A stretch of DNA of 64,000 nt, taken from Hyaloraphidium curvatum SAG 235-1. Its lineage: Eukaryota > Fungi > Monoblepharomycota. Below the pieces are notes generated by a model, which saw only the letters and a list, made by a program, of their open reading frames with translations, had not been told where the DNA came from and searched no databases. This document shows positions 24,394 through 41,218 of the stretch, piece by piece; positions within the stretch are counted from its first letter, which is position 1, and every line of letters starts with the position of its first letter. A program made the translations under genes and the position numbers. The stretch is taken from positions 496,001-560,000 of the forward strand of contig JAIVFI010000022.1 in assembly GCA_025558095.1 (NCBI GenBank), read 5' to 3'.

Positions 24394-25588
24394 TTGGATA
24401 ATCAGTACAAGTACGTTCCTGCCTTGACCGAACTGCCGCGGGGACTGCTCACGATCTACGGACAGCCATTGAAGAGGCAACCGGACTTTTCCACCACGGC
24501 CTCGGCGAGCGCAGCGCGGTGGCCAAAGCTCGCTTCTGGAGGAAAGACAGAGGACGGATGCCCGGAATCGCCGCTCCTGCGGCACGTAGCAGTCGACGGA
24601 TTGTGCCCTTGCCCGTCCCCAACGTGCGCAGGCGACCTGCCGCGGCGCGGCGGCTTGACTCGTCTGGTGTTGCTCGTTGCCGGCCCGCCGCTGTGGCAGC
24701 TTGTTATCTACGACATCCTCGTGCCTTGGACCTTCATAATCAGTTTCGGGAGCTACACGTGGTCCTAGCCGGGGCTCGCGGTTGTCTTTTCGCTCTCGCT
24801 TTTCTTCGGCGTGCTCTTCAATTACGTTGTCGCGTGGGGAAGCCTTGCCGGAGGGGCCGGCCAGTTTGTTTTGCAGCCATACCTGCGGCGCCTGCGAAGG
24901 CGGGCCATGAAGGACGCCCTCGACGCGATGCTGGATCGTCATTCGCGGGTAATGGAGGACGATCGTGCCGGCACTCCGAGCTCGCCGGCAGACTTTGCCG
25001 TCGCGCAATCCTACGAGGTCCTTCACTCCCACCTTGCACCGCTGTGGGAAGCCTCGGCCAGCAACCGCAACTTCACCCCGTTGGTCTTTGTCCACACAGT
25101 CTGGTGCATCATCTTCGGGCTGCTCTACCTCGTGGGTATTGGAAATGCCGCGCAGAGCCAACACTGACGATGTTTCCCTCCCACAGGCAACGGGTCGCTG
25201 CATTCCCGGCTTTGTCGTCGGCATACTGCTGTATCAGCTTTCAACCTTCGTGTTCGCCGTTGGCTCGGCCTCCGGCGCCAACGCCTCGATCAGTGACGCC
25301 CGGCACCTCTACCTCGCAGCGCAGTACCGCCTCCGGACCTTCCTCGCGCGACACGGCCCCTTCCCATCTGCCGCCGCGGACTCGCTCCGCGCGCACGACG
25401 CGCTGCTCGCCGCCTGCATCGCGCAGGCGGATGCGTCGGGGATGAAGCTCTTTGGCGCGACGGTCGGGCCGTCGGCCGTGCGGGTGACGGTCGTGACTCT
25501 GTTCACGATCCTGCTGGGCCTGTGGACCATCATCAGGGGCCTCGGAGGCACGCTGACGCTCGAGAGCATGTGTCCTATCGTTGCGTGA
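24394..25588 (+). pseudogene. 5'-truncated member of the 7-TM LTLESxCP membrane family, in-frame TAG at 24766-24768
   Basis: LLRH...LCPCPSPTCAGDL, LHSHLAPLW, CIPGF, LRAHDALL and LWTIIRGLGGTLTLESMCP align with 36798-38333. TM1-2 are missing. One intron at ~25132-25186. Confidence 0.75.
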
Positions 25589-35301: not shown

Positions 35302-35444
35302 CTGAAGGCAGACAAGGCGTCCCATTATGACCGCTGACTCACCCCTTGAAAGTCTCCTCCACCACCTACAAGAGCTCGGAACCGCGCAGCCCCACCCCTA
35401 TCGCCCACAATCTGCCATCCATCTCCCGAAGAAGACCATTCAGC

Positions 35445-36743
35445 ATGATGTCCGCCCAGCAGCTCGTTGCCTCCACCGCCAGGGGCCCCGCCCACGCCGG
35501 CAGCGACGGCCCCTCCGACGAGGCCAAGGAGCTCGGTGCGCTCTTCTTCGCGCCCACGCTGTCGCACGCCGATGCCGTCCGCTTCGCAACGATGCTCTGC
35601 GGCCCGCTGGAGAAGGCGGCGGCCTACTTCCGCCACCTTGCGCTCGCCCGCTGCCCGCGCCCGCCGTTCCTCCCCACGGACATCGACCCGGCCTTCACCG
35701 TCAGCGCGAACGCGACGCTCGAAGCGGTGCTCGAGATGGCCCAGGTCATGGCGGGCTTGCCCACCCGCGACGCCCGCATCGGACCCGAGGGCGAGATGGT
35801 CCACGCCAGGACCGCCACGGCGCTGGCCATCGCGCACGGCGGGCTGCTGCAGACGCTCTCGTGGATCGCAGTGGCTCTGGATGCTTCGACGATGGAAAGG
35901 TGGGGGATGCTGGGCAAGGGGCTTCCGAGATTCCCTCCCGACGCCTCCACGGGCGGGATCACCAAGCAACCCGACCCCATCGCGGACATGCGCCCCGTCT
36001 TCGTCGCAGCTTTCGTCAACCCGGCCATCGTGTGCACCACGCCATTCCAGGCGCTCGAGAAGCACCCCGCGCTGCGGCGGCGACTGGCGAAGCGGCCCGA
36101 CAACACAGAAGCATCCGCCCTGTTCCTGATGCTCGCCGATCCGGCCCGGCAGCTGTTCGAGAGGGCGGACTGGACCACCGCGCCCGAGGCCGAGCTGCGC
36201 ATGGCGATGATGGCTCTCACGAACAGGGGGAGGGCTCTCGTCTCCATTCTTCTCCAGGACCCGGCCCCGGCGCGTGCGTACCGCTCCTGCGCCCTGGCCG
36301 AGGGGCGGTACGACGTTCTCGGCGCGCTGGCTGCAGCTCTCGGCCGCATCGCATCCGTCGCGCGCTCCCGCCGCATGCACAACACGGGTCCCGCGGAGAA
36401 CACGGCCGGGCTTCTCGCCGCCTCCCTCGGGATCAGGGGGCGCGAGGAGGGTTGGGCGACGGCCCAAACGGAAGATTCCGAGAAGCGCATGGGGGAGATG
36501 GCCGCGAAGGAGAGGGAGGATGATGCTGGGGCGGGGGCCGATCGGTGCGACGCGTGCGGCAAGGAGGAACGAGGGGGGCAGAAGCTGATGTGGTGCGGCA
36601 AGTGCGGGTTCGCGAGGTACTGCTCCACCGCGTGCCAGAGGGGCGACTGGAAGGCGGGGCATGGGGCGGTCTGCATTCTGGTGCCGGCGCCGGGTTTCGG
36701 GAGGGCGGCCGACGGCGGAGCGAGGGTTAAGGTGGGGAAGTGA
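35445..36743 (+). CDS. MYND zinc-finger protein with helical N-terminal region
   Basis: CDACGK...LMWCGKCGFARYCSTACQRGDWKAGHGAVC. Intronless. The N-terminal region is unrelated to the other MYND genes here. Confidence 0.85.
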   Translation: MMSAQQLVASTARGPAHAGSDGPSDEAKELGALFFAPTLSHADAVRFATMLCGPLEKAAAYFRHLALARCPRPPFLPTDIDPAFTVSANATLEAVLEMAQVMAGLPTRDARIGPEGEMVHARTATALAIAHGGLLQTLSWIAVALDASTMERWGMLGKGLPRFPPDASTGGITKQPDPIADMRPVFVAAFVNPAIVCTTPFQALEKHPALRRRLAKRPDNTEASALFLMLADPARQLFERADWTTAPEAELRMAMMALTNRGRALVSILLQDPAPARAYRSCALAEGRYDVLGALAAALGRIASVARSRRMHNTGPAENTAGLLAASLGIRGREEGWATAQTEDSEKRMGEMAAKEREDDAGAGADRCDACGKEERGGQKLMWCGKCGFARYCSTACQRGDWKAGHGAVCILVPAPGFGRAADGGARVKVGK

Positions 36744-36797: not shown

Positions 36798-38333
36798 TCA
36801 GCTGCCCGCCCCGCCGCCCGGGCACACGCTTTCCAGCGTGACCCCTACCCCCACGCCCCGCAGCACGCCCCAAAGTACCGCAAACACGGTCAGCACGGTG
36901 ACCGCAAACACCCTGACGACGCCGTAGTCCACCCTGACGTCCAGGATGTACGTGGCCCGCTTGCCGTCCGCCGGCATGAAACCCGACAGCACGGCGTCGT
37001 GCGCTTCCAGTGCGTCCGCGGCCGGGCCGGTGGGGCAACGCGCGCGGAGGCGCCGGATCTCGTCGCGGGCGAGACTGTACAGGTCCTGCACAGAGGACAG
37101 GCCGGAGTTGAAGCGGGCGACGGTGAGGAGCCCGTCGAGGAGGTAGAAGCAGTGGACCAGGATGTGCGTCAGCACCCAGGCTGGGATGCAGGAGGAGCCG
37201 GCGGCGTAGATGAAGGCGTAAGCCAGGCCAAAGGCCAGCCCAAAGGCGAAGTTATTCTGAGCGAGACGATGGTTGTCAAAGCGGCGCTGCCAGGAGGGGG
37301 CGAGAAGGTGGTGCAGGGCGATGTATGGTAGGTCCGGTTCGTCCGCGGGGACCTGAACAAATGGCGATGTGTTGTTGACGAGGTCGCGGAGGCCGACGAC
37401 GAGATCCGACATTGCGAGGGATGCCACCCGCACCTGCAGGCGTGACTCCAGTGCAGCAGCACGAGGAGCAAATATCCCGTACGTGAGGCCTGAGTAAGGA
37501 ATCCAGAAGCACATGACGTTGTTGAAGATGTAGAGCGCGGCCAGGATAGCGCTCCAAGCGTTCGTCCACGTGTCGGAGCCCAGGGTGACGAGAGGAGTGA
37601 AGAACATGAGGAAGTTCATGATGGCGATAGAATGAAATACAATTTGCAACAGATTGCGAGCCAATGACGACCACAGGGGGCGAGTTGCGAGGTCGCCTGC
37701 GCAATTCTTCGCGGGGCAGGGACACAGCGGATCCGCGTCTCGGTGCTCCAGCAGAGAACGGGTGCCCGGAAATGTCCCCCGCAGCCCCCCTCCTTCTTCC
37801 AGATTGCGTGGCTCCTCCGCGCTGTGTCCCAATACGCTGGAGTCTTTGTTCCTGCCGGTTTGCACGGCCGAGGCGCGCTCGAGATAGCGGACGATCAACG
37901 CGAGGTCCCCGGCGCCCGACAAGTCGCCGCCTCGCGTGATCAGCCGCCTTCCCAATTCGAACCGGACCGCGAGGTACCACGTGAGCCCGATGTTGAGCGC
38001 CAGGGCCACTGTGGCCACTGCCTTCTCGCCCGTCCCGAACTGGGCACCGAACACCCACGGGACGACGAGCAACGGCACGGCCAGGACCGGGAAGACCAGC
38101 GCCGGCCGCATCGTGAGCCGTCCCCACGTGTCCGCGGCGAGCCGCAGCCGCACCAGTGCGTGTGCTGCCGGTTTTCCGCGGAGAGCGGCGAGCACGCGGC
38201 GCGCGTCCAGCGGCTCGCGCTCCGGCGGCGCCGCCGGCGGTTCCCATGGCGGTGACGGTGCAGGCGGGGCCGTCGACCGCAGGAGGGCGAGGTCGGCGGC
38301 GGAGAGGAAACCGGGCGCGTGGGGGGGAGCCAT
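36798..38333 (-). CDS. 7-TM membrane protein of expanded LTLESxCP family (possible GRL/DUF3537-like ion-channel receptor)
   Basis: Intact 511-aa ORF with seven hydrophobic segments, an HRDADPLCPCPAKNCAGD loop and the C-terminus VVRVFAVTVLTVFAVLWGVLRGVGVGVTLESVCP. Confidence 0.75.
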   Translation of the reverse strand: MAPPHAPGFLSAADLALLRSTAPPAPSPPWEPPAAPPEREPLDARRVLAALRGKPAAHALVRLRLAADTWGRLTMRPALVFPVLAVPLLVVPWVFGAQFGTGEKAVATVALALNIGLTWYLAVRFELGRRLITRGGDLSGAGDLALIVRYLERASAVQTGRNKDSSVLGHSAEEPRNLEEGGGLRGTFPGTRSLLEHRDADPLCPCPAKNCAGDLATRPLWSSLARNLLQIVFHSIAIMNFLMFFTPLVTLGSDTWTNAWSAILAALYIFNNVMCFWIPYSGLTYGIFAPRAAALESRLQVRVASLAMSDLVVGLRDLVNNTSPFVQVPADEPDLPYIALHHLLAPSWQRRFDNHRLAQNNFAFGLAFGLAYAFIYAAGSSCIPAWVLTHILVHCFYLLDGLLTVARFNSGLSSVQDLYSLARDEIRRLRARCPTGPAADALEAHDAVLSGFMPADGKRATYILDVRVDYGVVRVFAVTVLTVFAVLWGVLRGVGVGVTLESVCPGGGAGS

Positions 38334-38571
38334 GATGCCGGGGAGGCGGTCCCCTACTTCACCTCAACAAGAAAGCTAGCGCAAAATGCTTGAAACATGG
38401 TTAAAGCGTGTTCGTGATGGATGCAGACCCGTAGTCACCAGGATCCGTGTTGATGTTTCTGGGATCAGCGCGCTTGATCGACTCCCGAGCAGGTTGGATG
38501 CAGCCGGGTCAGCTAGTACAGTTCGTCGTCCGACATTCTTCCCGATCCGCCAACTTTAGAATGGGTCAGCG

Positions 38572-40100
38572 TCAGCCGCCCGCCCCGCCGCCTGGGCACA
38601 CGCTTTCCAGCGTCACGCCGACCCCCACGCCCCGCAGCACGCCCCAAAGTACCCCAAACACGGTCAGCACGGTGACCGCAAACACCCTGACGACGCCGTA
38701 GTCTACCCTGACGTCCAGGATGTACGTGGCCCGCTTGCCGTCCGCCGCCACGAACTCCGAAAGCACGGCATCGTGCGCTTCCAGCGCGTCCGCGGCCGGG
38801 CCCGTCGGGGAGCGGGCGCGGAGGCGCCGGATCTCAGCGCGCGCGAGGCGGTACAGGTCCTGCACGGCTGTCAGACCGGCGTTGAACCGGGCCACTGTTA
38901 GGAGGCCATCGAAGAGGTAGGGGCAGTGGACGAGGATGTAGGTCAGGGCCCAGGCCGGGATGCAGGAGGAGCCAGCAGAGTAGATGAAGGCGTAAACGAG
39001 GCTGAGGGCAAGGTTGACGGCAAAGATGCTCTGGCTGAGGCGGTGGCTGTCAAACCGTCGTTGCCAACAAGGAGCGAGAAGGTGGTGCAGGGCAATGTAC
39101 GGGAGGTCCGACTCGTCCTCAGGGGGCTGAAGGACTTGCGATGGGCTCTTTACGAGGTCGCGGAGGCGCACGACGAGGTCTGACACTGCCAGGGACGCGG
39201 CCCGAACCTGCAGGCGTGACTCCAACGAGAGCGCACTTGGAGCATACATCCCGTATGTGAGGCCGGAAAAGGGGATCCAGAAGGCAATACAATTGTTGGC
39301 GAGATAGAGCGCGCAAAGTACGGCGCTCCACGCATGGGTCCATGTAGCGGAACCCAGCGTGACCAGGGGAGTGAAGAAGAGGAGAAGGTTGTTCATGATG
39401 ACCAAATAGAATACGGTAGTAAAGAAATTGCGCGCCAACGACGACCAGAAGGGGCGAATAGCGAGGTCGCCTGCGCAGGATTTTGATGGGCAGGGACACA
39501 GCGGATCGCCATCTCGATGTTCCAGCAGTGAAGGGGTGCCCAGAGTAGCCATCCCTGTCCCTTTCCCGCGGCGTCCAGGTCGATCTCGGGTAATGTCTCG
39601 CTCTGTTTCGATCCGCCAGGTGGTTTCACGGCTCGCGCCGCACGCTCTAAGTAGCGAACGATAAGCGCCAGGTCCCCGACGCCAGACAAGTCGCCGCCGG
39701 GGGCATTCCGTCGCCTCCCAAACTCGAGCCGGACCGCAAGGAGCCCAGTAAGTACCATGTTGAGCGCCAGGGTCGCCGTGGCCACCGCCTTCTCGCGGGT
39801 GCCGAACTGGGGACCAAACGCCCATGGCACGGCGATCGGTGCTGTCGTCAGGAGCGGGAAGAGCACCCGCGGCCACGCCGTGATCCGTCCCAGCACGTCC
39901 GCCACGATCTGTAGCCGCACCAGCGCGTGTGCCGCGGGGCGGGTGCGCAGCGCGTCGAGGAGGCGGCGCGAGTCCAGCGGCTCGCGCTCGGGCGGCGCGG
40001 CGGGCGGATCCCACGGCGGCGCCGGCGCCGGCGAGGCCGCCCACTGCAGGAGGGCGAGGTCGGCGGCGGACAGAAAGGCCGCCGCGTCGGGCGGCGACAT
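38572..40100 (-). CDS. Tandem paralog of 36798-38333 (7-TM family); apparent -1 frameshift near 39555
   Basis: MSPPDAAAFLSAADLALL N-terminus (ORF 39393-40118) and the C-terminal part of ORF 38572-40170 are both colinear with the neighbour. One extra G in a G run joins them. Confidence 0.75.
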
Positions 40101-40477
40101 GTTTCGTGTGAGCGGCACAAGGGCGGTGGAACTTTCCCGCGCATCGAGCTGTCCCCCACTCGGTTCCCACCCAGAAGCGCCACCGAATCCTTCAGACCCT
40201 GTGTTGAAATACGGATTAGAATGACTTTAATACGATGCGGAGATGTCTTTTCCATTCTCGATGTTTTGGGGCGGGGCTGACCCTTGTGGTGGTCCTTGGC
40301 CGGCCGAGCAATACATGAGAAACCCACGTGTTAGTGCCAAAAGAAAGCAAGAATACGATGGATGCATGGCGCCTTATTGAAGGGCCAGGGTCTGTGGTCG
40401 TCACTTTATGGGGCCACCCTGATCGCCTCTTGCCACAGCGGCACGGTCTCCTGGGCCCGCGCGCGGACGCGTCCAAA

Positions 40478-41218
40478 ATGGCTTCGCAGAACGTCTACGA
40501 CGATCCCGGCTTCTTCAACGCGTACTCCAATCTCCCGCGGTCGCGCCTGGGCCTCGCCGGCGCGCCGGAATGGCACCTGCTGCGCGCCATGCTCCCGCCC
40601 CTGGGCGGGGCACGCGTCGCGGACCTCGGCTGCGGATACGGGTGGTTCTCGCGCTTCGCGGCCGAAAACGGAGCGGCGTCGGTGCGCGCGTTCGATCTCA
40701 GCGAGAAAATGCTCGGTCGCGCACGGGAGATGACCCCTGGGGGACCCATCGAGTTTGAGCTAGCAGATTTGGAGACCCTGGACGTCCCCGAGAGGGCCTT
40801 CGACCTCGTCTTCAGCTCCCTCGCGTTCCACTACGTGCAGAACGCGGACCGGCTGTACCACTCCATCTTCCGCTCCCTCGTCCCGGGCGGCTCGCTGGTC
40901 TTTTCGACGGAGCACCCCATCTTCACCGCGCCCTCGCCGCAGGCCTGGCATTCCGACGCCTCGGGCCGGCGCGCGTGGCTGCTGGACGGGTACTCCCGCG
41001 AGGGCCCGCGGACGAGCGACTGGCTCGCGGAGGGGGTGGTGAAACAGCACCGGACGGTGGCGACGACGGTGGGGTTGCTGCTGGGGGCGGGGTTCGTCCT
41101 CACGGGGTTGAAGGAGTTTGCGCCGACGGAAGAGCAGATTTTGGAAGAGCCGGCGATGGCGGAGGAGGCGGACAGGCCGATGTTCATGTTCATCTCGGCC
41201 AAGCGGCCGTCGAATTGA
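40478..41218 (+). CDS. Class I SAM-dependent methyltransferase, bacterial-like, intronless
   Basis: QNVYDDPGFFNAY..LPRS..GL.GAPEW, VADLGCGYGWF, FDLSEKML, FDLVFSSLAFHYV, LVFSTEHPIFTAP, EEADRPMF. Confidence 0.92.
   Translation: MASQNVYDDPGFFNAYSNLPRSRLGLAGAPEWHLLRAMLPPLGGARVADLGCGYGWFSRFAAENGAASVRAFDLSEKMLGRAREMTPGGPIEFELADLETLDVPERAFDLVFSSLAFHYVQNADRLYHSIFRSLVPGGSLVFSTEHPIFTAPSPQAWHSDASGRRAWLLDGYSREGPRTSDWLAEGVVKQHRTVATTVGLLLGAGFVLTGLKEFAPTEEQILEEPAMAEEADRPMFMFISAKRPSN

Follow-up and report, generated by a model that had tools for sequence, protein, structure and literature searches.

A roughly 400-copy seven-transmembrane family with a predicted insect OR/GR (7TMIC) fold in the fungus Hyaloraphidium curvatum: candidate chemosensory channels

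Genes A and B and a truncated third copy

The window, a 64,000-nucleotide stretch of the genome of Hyaloraphidium curvatum SAG 235-1, carries two adjacent members of one gene family, genes A and B, and a further copy, C (Table 1). Gene A matches the family HMM over positions 16-510 (E 4.5e-130). Both TM7 strings quoted in the first-pass annotation were recovered: gene A contains YILDVRVDYGVVRVFAVTVLTVFAVLWGVL, and the ORF at 24965-25588 contains MKLFGATVGPSAVRVTVVTLFTILLGLWTII. The strings HRDADPLCPCPAKNC, SSCIP and ESVCP were likewise present.

Gene B is broken by a change of frame. Its C-terminal piece is 78% identical to gene A (dN/dS 0.23) and its N-terminal piece 66% identical (dN/dS 0.42). 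The frame changes inside the 77 nt separating the two HMM pieces (39541-39617), which correspond to the variable loop and in which no GT..AG intron was evident. The start of the public model P0002 (417 aa) falls inside the C-terminal piece. Copy C, called the 24394 copy in the earlier annotation, lacks family HMM positions 1-159, carries an in-frame TAG near 24766 and contains one canonical GT..AG intron of 52 nt at about 25135-25186. The surroundings of genes A and B showed no transposase-like gene.

Table 1. Features of genes A and B and copy C, with the predicted parts of the gene A protein (positions are those of the window; residues are in protein numbering)
Feature	Position	Strand	Basis or remark
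Gene A, intronless CDS, 511 aa + stop	36798..38333	-	Single ORF; full-length family member
Gene B, C-terminal piece + stop codon	38572..39540	-	Family HMM 191-509, match at 38587-39540
Gene B, N-terminal piece, other frame	39618..40118	-	Family HMM 11-187
Copy C, truncated, pseudogene-like, in three pieces	24469..25582	+	Family HMM match
Cytosolic N-terminal region, residues 1-54, motif (E)WLALLP ... DPA ... PLT	38172..38333	-	Alignment consensus
Helix before TM1, residues 55-74	38112..38171	-	DSSP helix 54-73, model numbering
TM1, residues 77-95	38049..38105	-	KD peak and helix; low conservation, 1.13 bits
TM2, residues 101-126, helix running on to 133	37956..38033	-	KD peak; helix 100-132, model numbering
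Cytosolic loop-1 motif H197-x3-D201-x2-C204-x-C206-x4-C211, candidate Zn/metal site	37701..37745	-	Alignment
TM3, residues 218-242, least conserved helix	37608..37682	-	KD, AF2 helix; 1.00 bits
TM4, residues 259-283, right after conserved W256, contains W260	37485..37559	-	KD, AF2, conservation
TM4 cytosolic extension, residues 290-320, anchor bundle part	37374..37466	-	Helix 289-319, model numbering
TM5, residues 336-380, 45-residue helix, cytosolic half in anchor	37194..37328	-	AF2
Extracellular loop 3, S-C382-I-P, most conserved segment	37182..37193	-	2.96 bits
TM6, residues 385-432, 48-residue helix	37038..37181	-	AF2
TM7a, residues 437-452, cytosolic anchor-bundle helix	36978..37025	-	Helix 436-451, model numbering
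TM7a-7b linker, residues 453-469	36927..36977	-	Small beta hairpin in both models
TM7b, residues 470-493, putative pore helix, most conserved TM	36855..36926	-	2.55 bits
Short extracellular C-tail, residues 494-511, T-L-E-S-V-C504-P	36801..36854	-	Alignment

Topology, fold and conserved residues

Kyte-Doolittle (KD) peaks in gene A define seven hydrophobic segments (77-97, 104-125, 226-249, 258-281, 357-380, 383-408 and 468-492). The secondary structure of the AF2 monomer model (pLDDT 84.3, pTM 0.85) is consistent with these segments, with helices grouped as 1-2, 3-4, 5-6 and 7; model numbering is protein numbering minus 1, so that the TM2 helix 101-133 appears as 100-132. A second paralogue model also has seven TMs, with the same long TM4, TM5 and TM6 and with helices at 443-462, the equivalent of TM7a, and at 479-502. 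The N-terminus of gene A contains no hydrophobic signal-like segment, and the C-tail is confined to residues 494-511. In the family, long loops rich in K and R follow TM2 (median about 89 aa), TM4 (about 75 aa) and TM6 (about 61 aa); the medians for the opposite loops are 6, 8 and 3 aa. Mean K+R content, summed over the 10-residue flanks in 125 members, is about 9 on the N-terminal and long-loop side versus about 2 on the other side, and the positive-inside rule thus strongly favours a predicted N-in/C-out orientation, with no sign of N-out. In TM number, hairpin layout, lack of a signal peptide, long loops and very short C-tail, the description given in the first-pass annotation was borne out, and the predicted orientation agrees with it.

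Based on the models, the protein can also be compared with the features by which Himmel, Moi & Benton (2023, bioRxiv 10.1101/2023.08.30.555482) recognise 7TMICs. There are seven TM alpha-helices with the characteristic packing, and the extracellular loops are shorter than the intracellular ones. In both gene A and the second model, TM4, TM5 and TM6 run on for 25-30 residues beyond the membrane and build a cytosolic anchor; in the AF2 model of gene A, these extensions and the separate TM7a make up an anchor bundle of four helices. A 17-residue linker divides TM7 into 7a (437-452) and 7b (470-493). An N-terminal re-entrant loop, TM0, is no criterion in the same study. Parts of the N-terminal region 1-54 of gene A have pLDDT 86-92, and VIA alignments to OR chains begin at model residues 39-56; the modelled helix 55-74 is a possible counterpart of TM0, an uncertain assignment.

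Similarity to the Orco/GR fold, which had been named in advance as a test, was found in structure searches. In a Foldseek search of the PDB with the gene A model, 13 of the 16 top matches were OR/GR chains, with probability up to 1.0, weak E-values (0.016 and above) and TM-scores of 0.3-0.43 to the PDB chains. For two paralogues sharing 26% identity, the top-ranked chains in exhaustive structural alignment were those of insect OR/GR. Among ESM-Atlas structural neighbours, animal clusters aligned over 348-375 residues with TM 0.66 by target and 0.54-0.56 by query. These we take to be cnidarian and echinoderm GRLs, an identity that is presumptive because the clusters carry no Pfam name. Language-model neighbours included DUF3537 clusters (0.91) and 7tm_7/Trehalose_recp clusters (0.87-0.88), the top match being the presumed echinoderm GRL cluster (0.95). 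Together with TM number, topology and structural alignment, these neighbours support the earlier proposal of a divergent 7TMIC lineage.

Sequence searches gave no link from the family to any 7TMIC family by Pfam, PDB profile or PF12056. Pfam and NCBIfam scans of gene A returned nothing meaningful, nor did Pfam scans of 40 paralogues, and among 40 paralogues plus gene A no Pfam match to 7tm_6, 7tm_7 or DUF3537 (PF02949, PF08395, PF12056) was detected at E<=10. The one match from the PDB sequence-profile search, to PsaK, was at chance level (E 0.94), and a search of the genome with PF12056 gave no match, its controls being likewise silent.

Conservation is concentrated in TM7b (2.55 bits), extracellular loop 3 (2.96 bits) and the loop-1 motif (2.24 bits), versus 1.00 bits for TM3 and 1.13 for TM1; the anchor and the outer loops are conserved along with TM7b, and variation is found in the membrane-embedded parts of TM1-TM5. 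For 7TMICs, Himmel et al. (bioRxiv 10.1101/2023.08.30.555482) describe a distribution of this kind, in which conservation is highest in the anchor, the pore and TM5-6. Strongly conserved residues include R298 (90%) and R302 (97%) in the TM4 extension, W348 (88%) in TM5, an invariant N409 at the membrane-cytosol boundary of TM6, and R474 (92%) and T482 (96%) in TM7b. The cytosolic loop-1 Cys/His motif and the pair of extracellular Cys to which attention had been drawn are both conserved among the 125 members: H197 100%, D201 93%, C204 99%, C206 98% and C211 100% in the former, C382 99% and C504 97% in the latter. These five Cys are the only conserved Cys columns, and C382 and C504 occur together in 120 of the 125 members. 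Strands were predicted at model residues 381-383 in extracellular loop 3 and 496-498 in the C-tail of gene A. We infer a candidate Zn or other metal site at the loop-1 motif and a possible extracellular disulfide between C382 and C504.

The linker before TM7b has the family consensus R-A-R-F-L-G-F-x-V-D (K-R-A-T-Y-I-L-D-V-R-V-D in gene A). The G-F-x-V-D motif attributed to known 7TMICs is visible in the DUF3537 and algal GRL sequences of supplementary file 6 of PMC7746228, and the L-G-F-x-V-D of the family stands at the equivalent place. T482 lies 13 residues past D469, which by eye is the spacing in animal GRLs from the corresponding residue to the T of the TY motif. The TM7 motif (T/S)Y-h5-(Q/K/E)(F/L/M) (Robertson 2015, quoted in PMC7746228) is described as diagnostic, not definitive, for GR/GRL; the corresponding columns of the family hold T482, then V/L483, five residues that are for the most part hydrophobic, S/G/T489 and V/I/L490, so that one position of the signature is retained and a second only partly. 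The earlier statement that the insect TYxxxxxQF motif is absent holds only in part, as its T by eye appears to be kept.

Family size, distribution and selection

The first-pass annotation had described the family as expanded, which understates its size: the 31.9 Mb genome contains about 400 copies. A profile search of 1.84 billion representatives gave 452 matches at E<=1e-3 and 283 at E<=1e-30. The DNA pattern of the loop-1 motif matched the genome 413 times versus 7 times for a control, and a protein search within the genome gave 89 matches among 694 first-look candidates. Taxa were taken for the best 150 of the 452 representative matches, and all 13 named matches were H. curvatum; on these database matches the family appears to be species-restricted. 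A word-indexed protein search returned only four close paralogues, also with the alignment or the TM7 region alone as query; it was saturated by the Ala/Leu/Arg-rich composition and is uninformative on distant relatives.

Copies are both dispersed and in tandem, with a typical pairwise identity of 25-35%. Most are full-length open frames and some are broken, as in the frame change of gene B and the truncation of copy C. Across seven close pairs, dN/dS was 0.22-0.44. As judged by these coding-sequence comparisons, the family genes are shown to evolve by birth-and-death under purifying selection. On contig C10, one pair of copies in inverted orientation was observed to share identical motif DNA.

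Proposed role and comparison with known systems

We regard the family as a previously undescribed and very strongly expanded form of the known 7TMIC superfamily. The most probable reading, to which we assign a probability of about two in three, is that genes A and B belong to a Hyaloraphidium-specific family of about 400 seven-TM proteins with the insect OR/GR fold that would act as tetrameric chemosensory channels. The tetrameric, ligand-gated channel and the chemosensing role are proposed by analogy with Orco, OR and GR. On the pattern of those structures, the anchor bundle would hold four subunits together as a tetramer with a central cation pore lined by TM7b; R474 would lie at the cytosolic end of this helix, T482 midway along it and L491/R492 at its outer end. 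A ligand pocket that differs among paralogues might be formed by the outer halves of TM1-TM6, which are variable, and the repertoire might in this way sense many different environmental chemicals. The simplest reading of the His/Asp/3-Cys motif just before TM3 is a Zn2+ site with a structural or regulatory role, and a C504-C382 disulfide would staple the C-terminal tail to the TM5-TM6 loop at the outer mouth. More tentatively, the roughly 400 ligand-gated channels may constitute a fungal 'nose' with an origin separate from the OR/GR expansions of animals, regulated by Zn or redox through the Cys3-His motif and stapled by the disulfide.

A protein with the 7TMIC fold might instead serve self/non-self or mating-type-like recognition, metal or redox sensing, or constitutive ion or solute conductance. 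The invariant H/D/C3 motif and the structured N-terminal region, neither with a named insect counterpart, speak for such roles, as does the fact that non-animal 7TMICs have no known function. H. curvatum is moreover non-motile, and it is not evident what such an organism would need hundreds of chemoreceptors for. We nevertheless consider these roles unlikely, since about 400 diverged paralogues whose membrane helices vary while pore and anchor are conserved, under moderate purifying selection, carry the signature of ligand-diversified receptor repertoires, and one housekeeping conductance needs no hundreds of copies.

Less probable still is a convergent or unrelated seven-helix protein, a generic helical bundle that AF2 perhaps modelled with a bias to a known fold; a GPCR-, rhodopsin- or PAQR-type fold was rejected because none occurred among the structural matches. 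The copies might also derive from a mobile or selfish element, as its cargo or its remains, and most of them would then not be functional host genes, as hundreds of dispersed and tandem copies, broken members such as gene B and copy C, and the inverted pair on contig C10 could suggest. This we regard as very improbable, given the mostly full-length open frames and the neighbourhood of genes A and B, and transposon origin was rejected because of the 25-35% pairwise identity and dN/dS below 0.45.

A radiation of roughly 400 genes would occupy about 2% of a 32-Mb genome and would be the largest 7TMIC repertoire that we found reported outside Metazoa. It would show that in a fungus, too, this fold tends to expand in the manner of receptor families. 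Should the 'nose' proposal hold, massive chemoreceptor radiation of an ancient channel fold would not be an animal-only invention, and a microbial system for studying such radiation would be at hand. Hundreds of paralogues at 25-35% identity provide a deep natural alignment for the analysis of coevolution, pore and pocket, intronless genes allow easy expression, and the cytosolic Cys3-His-Asp motif and the extracellular Cys pair, both new, could reveal new channel regulation.

A full-text literature search gave no paper on Hyaloraphidium with gustatory receptor, and the genus is unnamed in the 7TMIC surveys (PMC7746228; bioRxiv 10.1101/2023.08.30.555482). The functions of the non-animal 7TMICs, DUF3537 and unicellular GRLs, are unknown according to the same two sources.

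The predicted fold matches that of insect OR, Orco and GR (PDB 8v02, 8z9z, 8v3d, 7lic, 8vc1, 8jm9, 8jme; Pfam 7tm_6, 7tm_7), whereas sequence similarity to them is not detectable and identity in the structural alignments is 7-12%. Of the insect TY-h5-QF motif, only the T is possibly retained. The family protein has about 100 extra residues, formed by the structured N-terminal region and the long loop 1 with its H/D/C3 motif, for neither of which a counterpart is named in insect receptors. It also differs in its conserved extracellular Cys pair, its fungal host and its longer, hairpin TM7a-7b linker. The Orco hinge at TM7a-7b is much shorter than the family's linker of about 17 residues. The animal GRL-presumed ESM-Atlas clusters are the best predicted-structure matches, with no sequence similarity detected.

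Plant and algal DUF3537 (PF12056) and unicellular GRLs are non-animal 7TMIC candidates by the same topology criteria as the family. Their Y-G-F-L-V-D or G-F-Q-L-Y-G-V-V before TM7b resembles, by eye, the L-G-F-x-V-D-Y-G of the family (PMC7746228 supplementary file 6), and the TM7 motif is largely missing from Spizellomyces GRLs, as in the family (PMC7746228). Neither the Cys/His motif nor the Cys pair was seen in the printed GRL and DUF3537 sequences compared (PMC7746228). Outside animals, the known 7TMICs are single- or few-copy genes, namely DUF3537 in plants, a few GRLs in protists and Spizellomyces GRL1, which has one copy in each of two Spizellomyces species (PMC7746228). Against the one to few copies per genome of the DUF3537 and GRL families (PMC7746228), H. 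curvatum has about 400.

Gene A, gene B and a third copy in the window

Hyaloraphidium curvatum is a non-flagellated organism within the Monoblepharidomycetes, and the assembly that includes the window (contig C22:496001-560000) is 31.9 Mb in size with a G+C content of 65%. Two neighbouring members of a seven-helix family, genes A and B, and a broken third member, copy C, were located in the window.

Coordinates of the family members in the window
Feature	Window position	Strand	Remarks
Gene A	36798-38333	minus	single uninterrupted ORF, 511 aa
Gene B, N-terminal piece	39618-40118	minus	family match, own frame
Gene B, C-terminal piece	38587-39540	minus	family match, frame differs from N-terminal piece
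Copy C	24469-25582	plus	family positions 1-159 (TM1-TM2 part) missing

Gene B stands in tandem with gene A, directly upstream, and its frame switches within 77 nt (39541-39617) in a variable, poorly conserved cytosolic loop; no GT..AG intron was evident in this stretch. Of gene B, only the last 417 aa are represented in the public gene model P0002. Genes A and B are 78% identical in the C-terminal two-thirds (dN/dS 0.23, NG86) and 66% identical in the N-terminal part (dN/dS 0.42, NG86). Since both pieces of gene B stay below a dN/dS of 0.45 against gene A, the switch reflects either a frameshift of very recent date or an error in the assembly. A single canonical GT..AG intron of 52 nt (25135-25186), in which CTGAC resembles a branch site, is kept in copy C, indicating that introns are present in some members. 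With its truncation and an in-frame TAG near 24766, copy C looks like a decaying family copy.

Adjoining gene A, a 465-aa protein (35346-36743, plus strand) carries a C-terminal MYND-type zinc finger, C-x2-C ... C-x2-C ... C-x3-C ... H-x3-C. The ORF just past gene B (40328-41218, plus strand) is SAM-methyltransferase-like, with a DLGCGYGW motif.

Family size and mode of evolution

The expansion claimed in the first-pass annotation was borne out at the genome level. A degenerate DNA pattern for H-x3-D-x2-C-x-C-x2-4-C gave 413 genome matches versus 7 for the reversed control; with a few overlapping duplicates discounted, these represent about 400 loci. A protein search of the same genome gave 89 scored matches among 694 first-look candidates. 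When 1.84 billion cluster representatives were searched with the family profile, 452 matched (399 at E<=1e-10, 283 at E<=1e-30), and all 13 named proteins among the best 150 of the 452 were H. curvatum singletons. Family copies lie on nearly all contigs, frequently in tandem clusters, and typical pairwise identity is 25-35%. The dN/dS (NG86) of seven close pairs was 0.22-0.44, which together with the broken copies marks this as a multigene family that evolves by birth and death, with purifying selection of moderate strength. It is not a recently active repeat.

Among several dense tandem clusters, one has six motif-bearing copies in 33 kb (G000:C1:703987-736677). On contig C10 of the same genome, two identical 45-nt motif DNAs lie inverted 4 kb apart (G000:C10:808980-809024, plus; 813173-813217, minus), which points to the duplication of a family member in inverted orientation very recently.

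Membrane topology and predicted fold

Residues are numbered as in the gene A protein; Met1 is absent from alignments A1 and A2 and from the first model, where tool position equals protein position minus 1. The sequence strings quoted in the first-pass annotation were all found in window ORFs, and its seven hydrophobic segments, ordered 1-2, 3-4, 5-6 and 7, were recovered both as Kyte-Doolittle peaks and in the AF2 secondary structure. Among 125 members, the mean sum of K+R in the 10-residue helix flanks is about 9 on the N-terminus/long-loop side and about 2 on the short-loop/C-tail side, and the median K/R count of the short loops is 0-1. Read by the positive-inside rule, the asymmetry strongly indicates, though does not prove, an N-in/C-out topology. 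The cytosolic residues 1-54 of gene A (38172-38333), where pLDDT is good, share with the rest of the family the motif (E)WLALLP ... DPA ... R ... PLT; no counterpart is named for insect receptors.

Sequence methods (Pfam, NCBIfam and PDB profile) gave no link from the family protein to anything. The template-free AF2 model of gene A, with 40 paralogues as input, reached pLDDT 84.3 and pTM 0.85, and its fold is of the type found in 7TMICs, the superfamily of insect OR/GR channels, GRLs and plant/algal DUF3537 (PF12056). In the model, TM4 (259-283) is continued by a helix at 290-320, TM5 (336-380, 45 residues) and TM6 (385-432, 48 residues) reach deep into the cytosol, and TM7 is split: TM7a (437-452) is a separate cytosolic helix, and 17 linker residues, which include a small hairpin, connect it to the membrane-spanning TM7b (470-493). 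Foldseek against PDB gave nothing at E<=1e-3; 13 of its top 16 rows were insect gustatory or odorant receptors (probability up to 1.0, TM 0.3-0.43), aligned colinearly from residue ~40-55 through ~490. Non-OR/GR rows aligned over at most 242 residues, the best-scoring over the cytosolic helical bundle only (~130-175 residues). The ESM-Atlas structure search detected three unnamed animal clusters (Cnidaria, Echinodermata and Arthropoda; TM 0.52-0.66 by target), the echinoderm one being also the top language-model neighbour; among named neighbour clusters DUF3537, 7tm_7 and Trehalose_recp recurred, with Tmp39 as the lone outlier.

Among chytrids, 7TMICs are known only from two Spizellomyces species, with one gene each (PMC7746228), and from class members given without further detail for Chytridiomycota and Blastocladiomycota (bioRxiv 10.1101/2023.08.30.555482). 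Hyaloraphidium is named in neither survey, and a full-text literature search found no paper pairing it with 'gustatory receptor'. The family is therefore classed as new: on the predicted model, a massively expanded, sequence-orphan member group of the known 7TMIC superfamily.

Conserved residues and comparison with known 7TMICs

Conserved columns in the 125 members are H197, D201, C204, C206, C211, W256, W260, R298, R302, W348, C382, N409, R474, T482 and C504. The Cys/His motif of loop 1 noticed at first pass is among them, and its three cysteines, C382 (TM5-6 loop) and C504 (C-tail) are the only conserved ones, the latter two occurring together in 120 of 125 sequences. The motif lies on the cytosolic side, six to about twenty residues ahead of TM3 (start near 218), and its His, Asp and three Cys may form a family-specific Zn2+ or other metal/redox site; alternatively, the cysteines could be S-acylated. 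C382 and C504 would form a putative extracellular disulfide, likewise family-specific. Short strands modelled in EL3 and in the C-tail would fit a tail resting on EL3. By analogy with Orco/OR/GR, the cytosolic bundle (290-320, 336-357, 410-432 and 437-452) may mediate tetramer formation, TM7b would line a central pore, placing R474 at its inner end and T482 halfway along, and the variable outer halves of TM1-6 could provide paralogue-specific ligand pockets.

Conservation peaks in EL3 (2.96 bits), TM7b (2.55) and the loop-1 motif (2.24); EL1, EL2 and the anchor segments of the cytosolic bundle (1.5-1.8) are also among the most conserved parts. The least conserved are TM3 (1.00), TM1 (1.13), TM4 (1.24), TM2 (1.28) and the membrane part of TM5 (1.29). 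This is the pattern of conserved pore and anchor described for 7TMICs, and the ligand pocket of insect receptors sits where the helices of the family vary. Ahead of TM7b the family consensus is R-A-R-F-L-G-F-x-V-D-Y-G-x-x-R-T; at the same place, as compared by eye and after the fact, DUF3537 and algal GRLs have Y-G-F-L-V-D or Y-G-F-F-V-D, and Spizellomyces GRL1 has G-F-Q-L-Y-G-V-V (PMC7746228, supplementary file 6). The insect TY-h5-QF motif had been reported absent, which holds for three of its positions but, as judged by eye, may fail for the T: counting 13 residues on from the D-equivalent residue leads to the T (or G) of the TY motif in Orco, Gr64a and the GRLs of Trichoplax and Nematostella, and by the same after-the-fact comparison an equal spacing separates D469 from T482 (96% conserved) in this family.
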